DNA of 64,000 nucleotides from Dendrobates tinctorius. Taxonomy: Eukaryota. The stretch lies in NCBI RefSeq assembly GCF_039654945.1, contig NW_027361806.1:7688001-7752000 (forward strand), written 5' to 3'. Position 1 is the first letter of the stretch. Every line of letters starts with the position of its first letter. The notes under the pieces are model-generated. The model was not told the DNA's origin. It did no database searches and worked only from the letters and a program-made list of their open reading frames with translations. Positions 861 through 42,440 of the stretch are shown here, piece by piece. A program made the translations under genes and the position numbers.

Positions 861-1598
861 CTCCTGTAGTCTTCCCAGATGCTGGAGAAGCACTTACTGT
901 GGATTGAGTATTTCCGGTCACATTTGGATTAGTAGTCTTTACTGATCCTGGACTACTACTTGGGTTAGTAGACACACTACTTGAAGCTCTTGTCGTCTCT
1001 CCTGATACTGTAGGAACACTTGCCCCAGATGTGGTTTTTACGCTCTCACTTGGAATGGTAGATGTACTACTACCTGGAGATCGTGTAATCGGCCGAGTTA
1101 CTAGAGAATGACTTGTGCCGGATTGAGTGTTTACAGTCACATTTGGATCAGTAGTCTTCTGTGATCCAGTAACACTACTTGGGTTAATGGTCACAGAACT
1201 TGTTATCTCTTCAGGTACTGAAGCTCCACTTGTTCTAGATGGGGTTGTGAAGCTTAGACCTGGACTAGAAGATGCACCATGTGTAGATGTTGTAGTCTGT
1301 CCAGATGATGGAGAAGGACTTGCTGTGGATGGAGTGTTTCCGGTCACATTTGGATTAGTAGTCTTTCCTGATTCTGGACTACTCAGGTTAGTAGACACAC
1401 TACTTAAAACTCTTGTTGTATCTCTTGGTAGTGTTGGTCCAGTTGCCCCAGATGTGGTTTTTGAGATTACACTAGCACTAGTGGAGGACCCACTATCTGA
1501 AGATGTTGTTGTGATCATTCCAGGTTCCTGAGTAGTTCTTGATCCGGGTGTGGTTGTTATTTCAGACCTATGAATAGTTGTTGAACCTGTGACTGCAG
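861..1598 (-). CDS. Tandem PTS cassette exon A (246 codons)
   Basis: Same splice sites; ends in phase 1, so the gene continues left of the window. Confidence 0.8.
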
Positions 1599-4500
1599 CT
1601 GCGTTAGTTGGGAGATAGGAAGACACATGAGTTATAATTGAATGAAGTTGAGTAAGTCTATCTGCAGTATATATGTGCTGCGTTTTATGCTGTTACCCAA
1701 CGGTTTTTGTTTTTTTTAAAGCTCTGGTGAAATTTAAAGATATAAAGAAGAATTGCAGTGATACATTTTCTGTAGTAAAATAGAATTGAAGATGTTCTTT
1801 TTAGCTCTTGGTAATTGCAGCATTGTTAGACATTTGGATTGCTGTTACTATTTTAACTTGTTAGTTCCATTAAAACTTCCTACCATTTCCCTCTATTGAA
1901 GGTGCGTGTCATTTGGTTTTACTGTTAGAAGAATTGGGGTTAGTAAAGGCTGTTATGACTGGAACATTTTAGACCCTGTATCTTGATCAAATTGGCCAAG
2001 GGCCGGCAACATTGAGGTCCAGAATTTAAGGAATCTTTTGATTTTATGTATTTTATCTTTCCTGTAAGAAGCCTCTGCGGCTTCACAAACTTCTGAGTAA
2101 TCTCCGAATGGTTCTAACTGTTAGTAGAGATTGAGTGGCAGCAACAAGATCCAAAGCCACCTTACAGTTCCAGAATCAGAAGATGTAGTCTGTAGTCAGG
2201 ACCAGATGTTTGACTTCAGAAACAGTGTAAACCCAGGATAAGAAGCAAAACCAGGAGATTGAATTCAATGTGGAACCAGATTTCGACACAACAGAATTTG
2301 TCAACCAGTGAGGTTGAGAAATACACCCAGGAGAGAGCCAGAATCCAAACCAGGAAACAATTGAGGTCCAGATCATAGAGAAAGAACCGTATAAGAACCA
2401 CTTAGAACCATGATTAGATTCAAAGTCTGAATGAGTAGATGTTATCAGAAGTTGATACAGGAAATAACAGACCCCAAAATGTGGCAGATTAAGGCCTAGT
2501 TTCACACTAGCGTTTTTTTGCGCAGCATTTTTGCGCAGTGCAAACGCATACAAAAAACGCATCATGCATTTTGTATGCGTTTGCTGCTTTTTTGCGCATA
2601 TGTTTTGCCATTTTTTAGCCATTTTTACTGAAAACGCATGCGTTCCCATAGACTGTAATGTGTTTTTTTGCGCATTCCGTGCGCATGCGTTTTTTTGAGA
2701 CAGGTCGGACGGACCAAAAATGCAAGAAGTTGCGTCCGGCGCGCTTGGGCGTACACTACAAAAAACGCATGCGCACGTAAAACGCTTACGAACGCATGCA
2801 AACGCTAGACCATGTGCACCCATGTTAAAGATAGGGGAAAAGGATGCATGCGCATGTATGCGCAAAAACGCAGCGCAAGAAAACACTAGTGTGAAACCAG
2901 CCTAGACCACAAAAAGTGTACAAAAAAACCCTAGGTACACAGTTAGGCTACATAAGCCACTGAGAGAACTAGAAGAAAGCAATGCTTCAGTATATTCCAG
3001 ACTTAGAGACAACTTGTCACCGGGTCAAAAGCTAACAGTTTTTTTATTTTATTTCTGCTGCTCTACTGAGTAGCACTGGTTGTTTTTTTTTTTTTTAAAG
3101 AATCCATTAATCGTTCCCAGACATATGGGTCTTTTTTTTTTTTTTGGTCTTTACTAAGGGTGCGTTAATTACAGTGTAACTATGCAGAGTCATAAAAATT
3201 GGCCGTACTAAATAAAATGACCCAGGTCTCCAGGTCTGAAAATGTTTAAGTAGTTAAGAAACAGAATACAAAAGGGAGCAGCAAAAATAAAATAAGAGTA
3301 AAACTGGCCACTTTTAGTGATTTTGATCTAATAGTAGATCCTGTTTATGGTCTATTTACATGGGAAAATAATTGAACAAATTGACTTAAAGGCCCCATCT
3401 CACATAGCGAGATCGCTAGCGAGATTGCCGAAGAGTCACCGATATTGTGACGCAACAGCGACCTCGCCAGCGATCTCGTTATATGTGACACTTGGCAGCG
3501 ACCAGGCATTGTCGCTGCTTGTGCTCGAATGTCCTGGGCCATTTTTTGATCGCTGGTGTCCCACTGGCCAGTGTGCATCGTGTATTTGACACCGACGAGC
3601 GACCTGGTTAGCGACTCAGAAATCATGGACGCAGGCGTGAGTCGTCAGAATCGCTGCTATGTGACAAGGTCCCAACGACCACCGAGGTCGTTATACAGAA
3701 CGCTGGATCATTGCTGCATCGTTGGGTAAATCTGACTGTTTAGCAGCTCACTAGCGACCATTTAGCGACGTACCAACGATCCTTACCAGGTCGTATCGTT
3801 GTCGGGATCGCTGGTGCGTAGCTAAGTGTAACGGTACCCTAATACTTATTTCTAATCCTGAGCCTATATGAACACGTACATATTCGATCAGCTCTCGTTC
3901 AAGGATGTAAATCGGCCCCTGTAAGTGGATTTTTATTCCAGGCTTTAAATATGACTAAACTTAGACATATGTATTTTGAGCTAAAATGTATTTTTACAAT
4001 TGTGTTTCATTAAAGATTAGTAGCCATTTGGCTCCAACAGGCTCTATATCTCACAGTACACGGCTTTCATCAGAATATGGTAACTGTGAATCTATCAGTA
4101 TACTTGTTCTGGTGGTGATGTTTGTTTCTCTTAACTTTTATCTACCGACCTCCAAGCTTTGATGTGGACACACGAGCCGCCCCAGCTTCAGGTGAGCACT
4201 GAATAATCTGTGATAGATCTGTAATAGATCGCTCAGTGCACATCGGCTGCCACTTTTCTTGGCAGCATGAAGATATTTTGTGCAGCACAACAATTAATTC
4301 AACTGATGAACGAGGGTTTTTTGCTTGTTCATCAGATTATTTGCAGCTCGTGTAGACTGCTCGATTATCGTGAACGAGCGTTCCTAGGATCTTTGCAAAC
4401 TCTACCACGAAAACAAGCTCACTGATAAACTCACTTTAGCTCATTCTGCAAATAGGGATTTTTATGCTTACAATTGGATCATTATACGCACCTCCTGTTG

Positions 4501-40386: not shown

Positions 40387-42440
40387 TGTGCAGTTTATTC
40401 TGGGGCTTTGGTATAAGTCCCAATGTCTGAGCCTTAGAAACCTGCAATACAGAAGTGATTATAGTCACAGGTTCAAACTAATAGTCACAAAGAAGTGGGC
40501 TCTGTTGTATGAAATGGGGGTTACTCTCCATAAAATGAGGATTGTTGTGTATCTTAGTAACTATAGTGGATATTCTGCAGACTGTAAGCCCCCAAGGGCA
40601 GGCTCCGCTCCCCTTCTGTCCCAGGGTTCCTCTCTGGCCATTGTTAGTTTGTTCATTATAATGTATATAGATTTTTTATTTTGTGTGTAAACCCTTTTTC
40701 ACATGTACAGCACCATGAAATCAATGATACTCTAAATATAAGTAATAATAATGATCATTGTCTACCTGTTCCACCTGATTTACACTGCAGCGCTGACTGT
40801 GCATATTGGAACAAGTTCTATAAAGCACAAGCTGAGCAGAAAGTCACTGAATGGAGAGAATGATTTCAAACACAAAATTGGACTTTCAGTGTTTGTTTTG
40901 TGAAGCTTAATTTTATTTCTATATATATATTTTTTTTTATAGAAAACTATTGTCAGGACAGACACAGCGATATAAGGAGTTGTCTGCCTTTGATTTCGAA
41001 GTTGGATCTATAAAACAGTGCAAAAGTGGTTATTATGATCAGTAATAGATGATCTGTCACTTTGGATAGGTTGTCATTGTTCTTAGCTCACAGGTCCGGG
41101 TGACACAGGACAATTTGCTGCCGAGAACCATGATTTTTAAGCAATTAAATTCAGCATAACCGCTGGGTCTCCTCACAGTTTACAACTAATTACTTAGTTT
41201 CCCAGAATATTGTAAAGTGACTGTTCTAAAAAGAAGGATCTCTCCAAAGAGGAAAACCCATTTTTGGTTATGTTGCCATTTGCTGCTGATTTTATTAATG
41301 AAAATTCTACAACTGCCCAATTTATCAGAAACGCCTCCATTCAGAAACAATATTCAGTGGCAGAAATTTCTGGAACAAAATCTGCAGTATGGAAATTCAC
41401 CCTTAATAAAAGTACTTTTTAATAGCAGATATAGTGAGAGTTTATGTGGTCCAGTTCACATATCAGATCCCGAATGCATTTTTTTAAATTATAAATAGTG
41501 GGAAAGGAATAGAGACATTGAAATAAAAAAACATAAAGTGTTCAAATGTGAAGAGGCATAAAAAATATTTTTTTAAGGCAAAATTAACTGTTTCATTCAC
41601 CAATTTAAAAAAAATATAGAAAACGGTGGTAATTCACATCTTTTGAGGGGTGAAGGAGTCTTAGCCTTAGGATATCCTTTCATATTTGTAACACAGAGTG
41701 ATCCCAGTTATTTCGTCATTACTAGTTCCTTTACTCGTTCTTGATGATATAATGCCGTTTTGAGTCATTTCAATGAGCCGTCATTAGCACAGCTGATACA
41801 TCATATCCTATGAAATTATATTGTTTGTTCGTTATGGAAATGAGCGAGGCAAAAGTTGAAAATATGTTGATTATAATTATGTACATAATAAAGGCAGGCT
41901 CGTAAAACCGGTCTATAAGTTATGATAGATCAATCAACATTTATTTTTTTAGCTCCGGGACTTTTAAGTTACACAGTGATTGTGACTGCGGCGGAAAGAT
42001 TAAAAGCAAAACTAGGACAACCAGGGCGAGAACTTCGTAATTTACAGACAGATCTTGCAAAGGTTAAATTGACTTAGATATCGCAGAACTGGGATATCTC
42101 GGCACAAAAATGTGTAATTCTATGCCTACAGATCTAATAAGGGTTACCTTGACTCAAATACCACAGCCCTGGATATTGTGACATCTAACCCAACAATGGA
42201 CATTGAAGATAACTTTCTCTGACAAGTTGCATTGTGACTCATATTCTTTGTCATATCTGTACAATCAGTGGCAGTCCACCAAAGGTTAAAAACCTGGGTA
42301 CACGTGCTGAGGGATGAGCATGGAACAATCTGTAATAGCTGAATCAGTGCCATTGTTCTTGTCAGTGCAAGTACGATGTGCTGCCAAGAGTGACAATTTT
42401 TAAGCAGGCTTAAAAATTATTTCACAATATGAATAAAGAG

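Follow-up and report, generated by a model that had tools for sequence, protein, structure and literature searches.

A transcribed frog gene predicted to encode a transmembrane mucin with two SEA domains ahead of its PTS region

Introduction

In MUC1, MUC3/12/17, and MUC13, a single SEA domain that acts as a force-breakable link lies between the membrane and the part of the chain enriched for proline, threonine, and serine (PTS region), and MUC3/12/17 and MUC13 carry EGF domains in addition. MUC16 starts with a giant N-terminal PTS exon, after which dozens of SEA repeats follow beside the membrane. Here we analyzed a stretch of 64,000 nucleotides from the frog Dendrobates tinctorius (contig NW_027361806.1, positions 7,688,001 to 7,752,000), hereafter the window, and describe a gene on its minus strand whose predicted product carries two SEA-type modules, SEA1 and SEA2, ahead of a very long PTS region. 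An initial annotation of the window, made from the letters alone, had stated that this order fits no human mucin that could be named, and this is supported: MUC16, MUC1, MUC3/12/17, and MUC13 all differ from it.

With MUC1, MUC3/12/17, and MUC13 the predicted protein shares a signal peptide, a PTS region, an SEA domain with a G/SVVV-type motif, a single transmembrane (TM) helix, and a cytoplasmic tail, but it has no membrane-proximal SEA domain and no EGF domain. Among the features by which SEA-type transmembrane mucins are recognized, the signal peptide and the single C-terminal TM segment are predicted here, and an SEA domain between the PTS region and the membrane is absent. The likeness to MUC16, most of whose SEA domains do not cleave, lies in SEA domains interleaved with O-glycosylated linkers and in a single-pass anchor with a short tail. 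MUC16 was rejected as an identity for the window protein, which has two SEA modules, both of them N-terminal.

Combinations of SEA and mucin domains have been described before in related frog proteins. According to PMC4948705, Xenopus possesses a family, described as secreted, in which SEA and PTS domains alternate (Lang et al. 2007, cited in PMC4948705). An SEA domain ahead of a PTS region is therefore not new for amphibians, and the architecture does have precedents: beside the Xenopus family, the hylid orthologues described below alternate SEA and PTS domains before a TM segment. In this comparison, which is by description only, the window protein resembles the Xenopus family in being amphibian-specific and in having SEA ahead of and between PTS sequence, but it differs in its TM exon, the Xenopus proteins being described as secreted. 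The alternation takes the form SEA-linker-SEA-PTS in the window protein and is stronger in hylids. In the same source, a mucin PTS domain is one whose Ser+Thr content is 40% or higher and whose Pro content exceeds 5%, commonly in repeats. The PTS domain of chicken Muc13 is encoded by multiple exons according to PMC1552070.

Results

Gene model

In our reading, to which we assign a probability of roughly 0.78, the gene encodes a type-I transmembrane mucin with a total length of about 2,233 residues, and the region supplies residues 1 to 1753. The gene lies on the minus strand, spans about 77 kb, and continues beyond the left edge of the window, where positions are given as negative window coordinates (about 140 kb were read leftward, 204 kb examined in all). 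The list of open reading frames (ORFs) contains eight long Ser/Thr-rich minus-strand frames at 802-20451, and only short open stretches at 20.5-40.5 kb. Over 861-40441 the initial annotation had placed a hidden mucin of 17 exons and at least 1763 residues, and an independent search by splice site and phase rebuilt the same 17 exons on the minus strand with the same phases (1763 codons, no stop). The nine small exons end in phases 1,1,0,2,1,1,0,2,1 and all PTS exons are 1-1. Two details of that proposal had to be changed. The coordinates and phases of the nine hidden exons stand, but the transcript uses acceptor 33141 for exon E7, which brings the length up to the end of exon P8 to 1753 residues; and the extent of 861-40441 does contain the exons, but 40441 is an acceptor that is preceded by an exon of the 5′ untranslated region (UTR) at about 60.7 kb. 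Once the exons to the left of the window are joined, the complete spliced frame comprises 2,233 stop-free codons. The predicted domain order is signal peptide (1-19), SEA1 (~25-125), T/S linker, SEA2 (~266-360), PTS region, stalk, TM helix, and a 21-residue tail. The features are as follows.

E0: 60715..60881, minus strand, 5′UTR exon; donor 60715 (gtgagt) fixed, 5′ end approximate, from the length of the spliced contig
E1: 40353..40441, minus strand, acceptor 40441, ATG 40386; first 11 codons of the signal peptide; ends in phase 1; joint 39885/40353 in 4 runs
E2: 39847..39885, minus strand, remainder of the signal peptide; phase 1-1; both flanking joints in contigs
E3: 37841..37947, minus strand, SEA1 exon 1 (beta1, start of alpha1); phase 1 to 0
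E4: 36144..36205, minus strand, SEA1 middle exon with LPDC motif; phase 0 to 2
E5: 35382..35533, minus strand, SEA1 last exon with TKVLV; phase 2 to 1
E6: 34467..34865, minus strand, T/S-rich linker with conserved RPYPCCP and STVNVW; phase 1-1
Intron 6: 33142..34466, minus strand, decayed copies of 15-residue PTS repeats, best kept at 33822-34367
E7: 33059..33141, minus strand, SEA2 exon 1; GC donor (GCAAGT); ends in phase 0
E8: 28523..28581, minus strand, SEA2 middle exon; phase 0 to 2; colinear with the hylid SEA2-type domain
E9: 26103..26248, minus strand, SEA2 last exon; PGSVNV at the predicted beta2-beta3 turn; phase 2 to 1
P1: 20133..20369, minus strand, first PTS exon; starts with DAIPSEL, compare hylid DAVPSDL right after SEA2
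P2: 18021..18179, minus strand, PTS exon; phase 1-1
P3: 15832..16359, minus strand, PTS cassette exon; phase 1-1
P4: 12551..13288, minus strand, PTS cassette exon; phase 1-1
P5: 10107..10421, minus strand, PTS cassette exon; phase 1-1
P6: 7221..7961, minus strand, PTS cassette exon; phase 1-1
P7: 4492..5214, minus strand, PTS cassette exon; phase 1-1
P8: 861..1598, minus strand, PTS cassette exon; phase 1-1
P9: -1561..-1875, minus strand, cassette series continued left of the window; phase 1
P10: -2292..-3032, minus strand, cassette series continued left of the window; phase 1
Px: -6148..-6369, minus strand, short PTS exon unlike the cassettes; phase 1
TM exon: from -15974, stop at -16137, minus strand, stalk, 20-residue hydrophobic helix, 21-residue tail; stop overlaps ATTAAA

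Transcript evidence and the 5′ end

This is a real, transcribed frog gene. Contigs from public RNA runs were aligned to 34430-40429, namely from X1, X2, and X9 (organism A, two studies) and from X5 (organism B, a third study), and in all four runs five introns are skipped to the base (34865/35382, 35533/36144, 36205/37841, 37947/39847, and 39885/40353). Each of the five skipped stretches is bounded by CT..AC, that is GT..AG on the minus strand, and the organism A contigs show 0 differences from the exons. The word depth of the spliced contigs is about 10-30 in several runs and in the second organism. In the 6.36-Gb assembly only one copy of the SEA2 exon E9 is present, so the joined contigs represent spliced RNA and not a retrocopy. 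Spliced reads across the junctions, on which the initial annotation had staked its model, are thus available for the five joints from E1 to E6, each exact, and for E6-E7. The order of signal peptide, SEA1, T/S linker, SEA2, and long PTS region that it had proposed is likewise supported.

The contig of run X2 continues 181 nt past 40427 and departs from the genome at acceptor 40441, and its loose end has a unique match at 60715-60730, directly before a gtgagt donor. Position 40441 is hence an acceptor and not the start of the gene, and the 5′UTR exon E0 lies at about 60.7 kb. The main frame of E0 holds no in-frame ATG, which makes the ATG at 40386 (context ACAATGG) the start codon and puts the SEA domains truly at the N-terminus. 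A 9-codon upstream ORF, out of frame with the main ORF, was observed in E0 (60749-60775, minus strand, ATG 60775). Cleavage of the signal peptide is predicted after VSG and before QTTPSG (19 residues, then Q), and its start is backed by the spliced contigs together with the lack of an in-frame ATG in E0.

At the donor of E6 (34467) the transcript leaves the genome, which means that the intron 6 block is spliced out. The letters joined to this donor are nt 31-60 of E7 as first drawn, so the acceptor in use is 33141 and not 33171. This shift of 30 nt is in frame and removes 10 residues, and a RefSeq model of Ranitomeya has the same shorter junction. The E7 donor reads GCAAGT, giving a GC-AG intron. 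Beyond E6 the X2 contig extends for 554 nt, room for E7, E8, E9, P1, and the start of P2, a length consistent with those junctions; its first 30 nt were read. The junctions E7-E8-E9-P1 and P1-P8 are predicted from splice signals and phase, from the open frames, and from hylid proteins, with which the model is nearly colinear apart from one 1-residue gap at the E8/E9 junction.

Relatives in hyloid frogs

A HMMER search with the 48-residue E9 peptide against 1.84 billion proteins returned two significant relatives, both hylid: XP_069838007.1 of Dendropsophus ebraccatus (P0001, 1353 residues, 53% identity) and XP_056388408.1 of Hyla sarda (P0002, 1586 residues, 47%). Further matches (P0003-P0006, a Mycoplasma protein and unnamed ENA repeat proteins) were set aside as compositional. 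The identity of the two hylid proteins to the window model is 41-53%. P0001 consists of a signal peptide, an E3-E5-like domain, an E6-like linker, blocks of 15-residue PTS repeats, three E7-E9-like domains, a short PTS region, a TM segment, and a 7-residue tail. Each of its E7-E9-like domains is followed by DAVPSDL, and P1 of the window begins with DAIPSEL. Its signal peptide motif LVLMVS.QTTPSG is also shared with the window protein. P0002 has no signal peptide and looks N-terminally truncated. Common to the hylid proteins and the window protein are an SEA1-type domain (LPDC, FPxxNHT), a linker with RPYPCCP and STVNVW, an SEA2-type domain, a PTS region, a homologous TM segment, and a short tail. 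The hylids differ in having at least three SEA2 copies or three SEA1 copies, which alternate with short 15-residue PTS repeats, whereas the window protein has one copy of each SEA type and its inter-SEA repeats are lost to an intron; the hylid SEA1 also keeps G-S-V. Moreover, the last hylid SEA domain is only about 90 residues from the membrane, whereas in the window protein SEA2 is separated from the membrane by about 1,800 residues that are built from another PTS cassette.

Both hylid proteins are named 'mucin-2-like' in RefSeq. Their Pfam domains are SEA only, with no VWD, C8, or TIL domain, and the label is therefore misleading. An identity as a gel-forming mucin, which would call for VWD-C8-TIL assemblies, CysD domains, and a cystine knot, was rejected on the same grounds and in view of the 8 Cys found in the whole 2,243-residue model. 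In Ranitomeya variabilis, the RefSeq model (P0008) is a 280-residue fragment, labelled 'uncharacterized', that is 76% identical to E4-E7; it starts in an intronic frame and stops via read-through of the GC donor. An open frame in the E3-E4 intron of the window (36962-37264, minus strand) matches approximately the first 45 residues of P0008, and unrelated contigs pile up in a repeat-like manner at 36630-37230. A repeat-derived frame, rather than the true first exon, is probably where the Ranitomeya model begins. The protein of the window species itself was not found in word-indexed protein searches, and neither were ORFs from RNA contigs. With relatives found in hyloid frogs only, the gene appears to be lineage-restricted, as had been supposed at the outset.

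Two N-terminal SEA modules

Pfam searches and structure prediction were run on the hylid orthologues and not on the spliced window sequence. Through its homology to them, SEA1 is taken to be a genuine SEA domain. The N-terminal region of the model (SEA1 plus linker) is 41-44% identical to hylid SEA1-type domains (E ~1e-21 to 3e-36), which align end to end with SEA1 of the window and score 39.6 bits (P0001:80-192) and 98.3 bits (P0002, 3 copies) against Pfam PF01390, where the gathering cut-off is 26.4. Against the PDB, the hylid SEA1-type domain matches the SEA domain of 2e7v by sequence at E 1e-5, and its profile matches 2e7v (E 1.5e-6), 8vis, and, weakly, 1ivz. The nearest sequence relatives of the SEA1 type outside frogs are TMPRSS11-type proteases (2e7v and 8vis) and UMODL1, with E of 1.5e-6, 6e-3, and 1.8e-4; these are no mucins but type-II serine proteases or FN3/EGF proteins. 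Searched one exon at a time, the open frames of E3-E5 and E7-E9 gave no Pfam SEA match, and a genome-wide six-frame search with PF01390 did not list the exons of the window. The profile search proposed as a check on the SEA modules therefore had a divided outcome: neither the single exons nor the intact hylid SEA2 gave a match, but hylid SEA1 passes and the SEA2 type is SEA by predicted structure. At the position of the cleavage motif SEA1 reads TKVLV, with G-S-V in hylids and in the neighbouring gene, and it has no G-S cleavage motif. The linker exon E6 carries a conserved Cys-Cys pair (RPYPCCP).

As judged from structural modelling, SEA2 is an SEA fold of a divergent type that is overlooked by the Pfam model. 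An AlphaFold2 model of a hylid SEA2-type domain, 52% identical to the window exons and built from an alignment that included E7 and E9, has a mean confidence (pLDDT) of 74.5 and a beta-alpha-beta-beta-alpha-beta order with G-S at the beta2-beta3 turn, where the motif PGSVNV of SEA2 is also predicted to lie. Its top Foldseek matches are SEA domains. In VIA-align comparisons, six SEA entries scored Z 12.6, 12.5, 12.1, 11.7, 11.4, and 9.1, and the first unrelated fold 7.5. The best match was MUC16 SEA5 (Z 12.6, root-mean-square deviation 2.0 Å over 98 residues), and further matches included mouse MUC16 (Z 12.5), TMPRSS6 (Z 11.7), and the SEA domain of Gpr126 (Z 9.1). MUC16 thus provides the best structural matches to the SEA2 type (Z 11.4-12.6) at a sequence identity of only 15-20%. 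Since the modelled domain matches SEA structures well above other folds, SEA2 is taken to be an SEA domain. The intron positions and phases of SEA2 are the same as those of SEA1 and of the SEA domain in the neighbouring gene. Searches of the PDB with the SEA2-type domain, by sequence and by profile, gave chance matches only (e.g., invertases), and the pairwise score between SEA1 and SEA2 was not significant (z 2.0).

PTS region and intron 6

The PTS stretch comprises 1,813 residues (T 24.5%, S 23.2%, P 8.9%) in repeated cassettes, a composition within the range given above for PTS mucins. PTS exons P1-P10 are all phase 1-1 and are followed by the short terminal exon Px. Each of P3-P8 lies within a tandem unit of exon plus intron of about 2.4-3.6 kb. 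The cassette exons are 83-95% identical to one another, and the first 600 nt of their introns 66-91%.

Upstream of E7, intron 6 holds what seems to be a coding repeat block turned into an intron. Its frames are 41-55% identical to the PNPSGQ-type coding repeats of the hylids (E down to 3e-31, tblastn with P0001 and P0002), and read-through from E6 into it meets a stop after 14 codons.

C-terminus

The initial annotation held that the family could not be fixed with the C-terminus outside the window, but it can: we located the predicted C-terminus about 16 kb to the left, where an exon encodes a single TM helix and a short tail, and no EGF, ZP, GAIN, or vWD domain was found in the 204 kb examined. 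Nor was there any further SEA exon in these 204 kb except that of the next gene, and the interval from P1 to the TM exon contains none. Hydropathy peaks for the whole protein (2.84 over 19 residues) at residues 2193-2212, within the TM exon, which is 42% identical to the TM region of XP_069838007.1. All junctions from P8 to the TM exon keep phase 1, and we infer that this exon is joined to the PTS exons. For the 326 nt from the TM exon onward, the share of sampled words present was 0.59-0.74 in runs X2, X9, and X10 and 0.20-0.26 in X1 and X4; this partial coverage fits a terminal exon that ends about 20 nt after ATTAAA. A damaged or alternative second copy of Px was observed between Px and the TM exon (~-11849..-12049, minus strand), its usual acceptor leading into a stop.

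Alternative explanations

Several observations weigh against a transmembrane mucin with two N-terminal SEA domains. The linkage P1-P10-Px-TM lacks joining reads and is argued from splice signals, phase, homology, and shared expression. A strong GTAAGT inside the TM exon, after ..VIVC, would permit an extra small tail exon, as the hylid tail suggests, and a search for such an exon beyond it gave no convincing candidate. The SEA assignments of the window modules come through homology to the orthologues. SEA2 in particular gave no Pfam SEA match at E up to 10, whether as exons or as intact hylid domains, and hhalign of SEA2 against SEA1 profiles returned a probability of 28% (E 6e-4). These last results, along with the absence of a PDB sequence match and the insignificant score against SEA1 (z 2.0), would be expected if the second module were an unrelated small ferredoxin-like domain with a chance G-S-V. 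That is improbable: every one of the structural matches is an SEA domain, with scores 4-5 Z units higher than those of other ferredoxin-like folds, intron positions and phases agree with those of SEA1 and the neighbour's SEA, and G-S occupies the beta2-beta3 turn as in cleaving SEA domains, with the G-S-V motifs in register in the hhalign alignment.

The missing reads between PTS and TM exons bear also on a secreted product, in which the TM exon would be skipped or belong to another transcript. The Xenopus SEA/PTS family, described as secreted in PMC4948705, offers a parallel, and the duplicated, apparently damaged PTS exon at about -11.9 kb may mark a gene end in flux. We consider secretion unlikely in the face of the phase 1-1 continuity into the TM exon, the complete hylid orthologue that ends in a homologous TM segment, and the presence of the TM stretch in the same runs as the N-terminal spliced contigs. 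It is still harder to accept that the SEA-SEA-PTS exons are the 5′ part of one enormous gene running through a 33-kb intron into the 9,060-residue exon downstream, with SEA at both ends. Both lie on the same strand, the downstream gene opens with broken PTS pieces, no signal-peptide exon was found for it, and its SEA, a clear relative of SEA1 (z 16.6), is split into three exons with matching phases; yet a stop and ATTAAA come after the hylid-homologous TM exon at about -16.0 kb, the RNA runs cover that exon about as far as a poly(A) site there allows, and the hylid orthologues end right after the homologous TM segment. Least credible of all is a decaying or non-functional mucin copy with transcripts as noise. 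The decayed intron 6 repeats, the damaged exon copy, the lost G-S motif of SEA1, and the transposon next to the P2 acceptor could be read that way, but a spliced frame of 2,233 codons without a stop, spliced contigs at a word depth of about 10-30 in several runs and a second organism, and cassette exons more alike than their introns all oppose it.

Neighbouring genes and repeats

Downstream of the gene, from about -36 kb, broken PTS pieces are followed by a 9,060-codon frame on the minus strand (-42932..-70111, contig 7617889-7645068), which is 42% Ser+Thr, or 50% counting Pro. The end of this frame encodes the start of an SEA domain, the rest of which comes from two small exons (phases 0, 2, 1), and a TM-like exon lies near -79.1 kb (contig ~7608900). 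The relationship of this SEA domain to SEA1 is clear (local score 107, z 16.6), and it appears to be the closest relative of SEA1. The neighbour looks like a giant mucin of the classical PTS-SEA-TM kind in its own right, a tandem paralogue and not part of the gene under study, which has its own predicted TM segment, stop, and poly(A) signal. Farther away, the minus strand at contig 8.00-8.70 Mb contains at least 8 partial Pfam SEA matches (21-24 bits, under 26.4) in frames of 982-2,333 codons, pointing to clustered mucin genes of the classical PTS-then-SEA order at 0.3-1 Mb from the window.

Putative mobile and satellite-like sequences were observed within the introns. On the plus strand at 18517-19611, in the intron upstream of the P2 acceptor (18179), two frames (245 and 112 residues) resemble halves of a Tc1/mariner-type transposase by eye. 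The E9-P1 intron (21600-25140) holds His/Thr/Tyr-type repeat frames and Pro/Ala/Gly-rich frames on both strands in mirror-image order, and the mirror parts (~22175-23050 plus, ~23470-24600 minus) look like a large inverted duplication of satellite-like sequence. Transposon-like sequence makes up most of the part at 41-64 kb, the mucin gene's 20-kb first intron, and a 910-codon plus-strand frame in it (49375-52107) resembles by eye a long interspersed nuclear element (LINE) reverse transcriptase/endonuclease.

Discussion

By analogy with the known families, the product would be a bottle-brush stalk, dense in O-linked sugars and tethered to the apical membrane, that bears two folded SEA heads at the far end. 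Self-cleavage of SEA2 may occur between G and S, the halves remaining held non-covalently, and force would then free only a small N-terminal cap, whereas in MUC1 it is the mucin domain that is released. Chains may be cross-linked through the Cys-Cys linker, and disulfide cross-links are likewise suggested by the conserved Cys of LPDC. As for its origin, comparison with the relatives suggests an ancestor in which SEA and PTS domains alternated. In this lineage, the inter-SEA PTS repeats would have been dropped from the mRNA, to decay in what is now intron 6, and the PTS region after SEA2 would have grown by tandem duplication of exon-plus-intron cassettes; loss on one side and growth on the other would have placed the SEA pair at the distal tip. 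Taken as a whole, the proposal of a tip-SEA membrane mucin with a self-cleaving SEA2 of a subfamily found in hyloid frogs only, a releasable cap (SEA1 plus the Cys-Cys linker), and an order that arose within frogs is a tentative one, and we regard it as doubtful. If true, the cap could be released by pulling or binding without shedding of the stalk, a use of the SEA breakpoint unlike the membrane-protecting one proposed for MUC1-type mucins.

What is new here is the combination of a predicted TM anchor with both SEA domains distal and none near the membrane, a putative Pfam-invisible SEA2 type of hyloid frogs, and a rearrangement mechanism that is still visible in the gene. With this gene, the little-studied mucins of amphibians that have SEA and PTS domains gain a member that is verified and expressed, and it corrects the labels of the two hylid 'mucin-2-like' proteins and of the 280-residue 'uncharacterized' Ranitomeya fragment. 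The divergent SEA2 type could join domain libraries. One gene shows two remodelling processes, with a coding repeat block lost to an intron and another grown by cassette duplication, and an SEA domain far from the membrane bears on the idea that the SEA domain of mucins is a membrane-proximal mechanical fuse.

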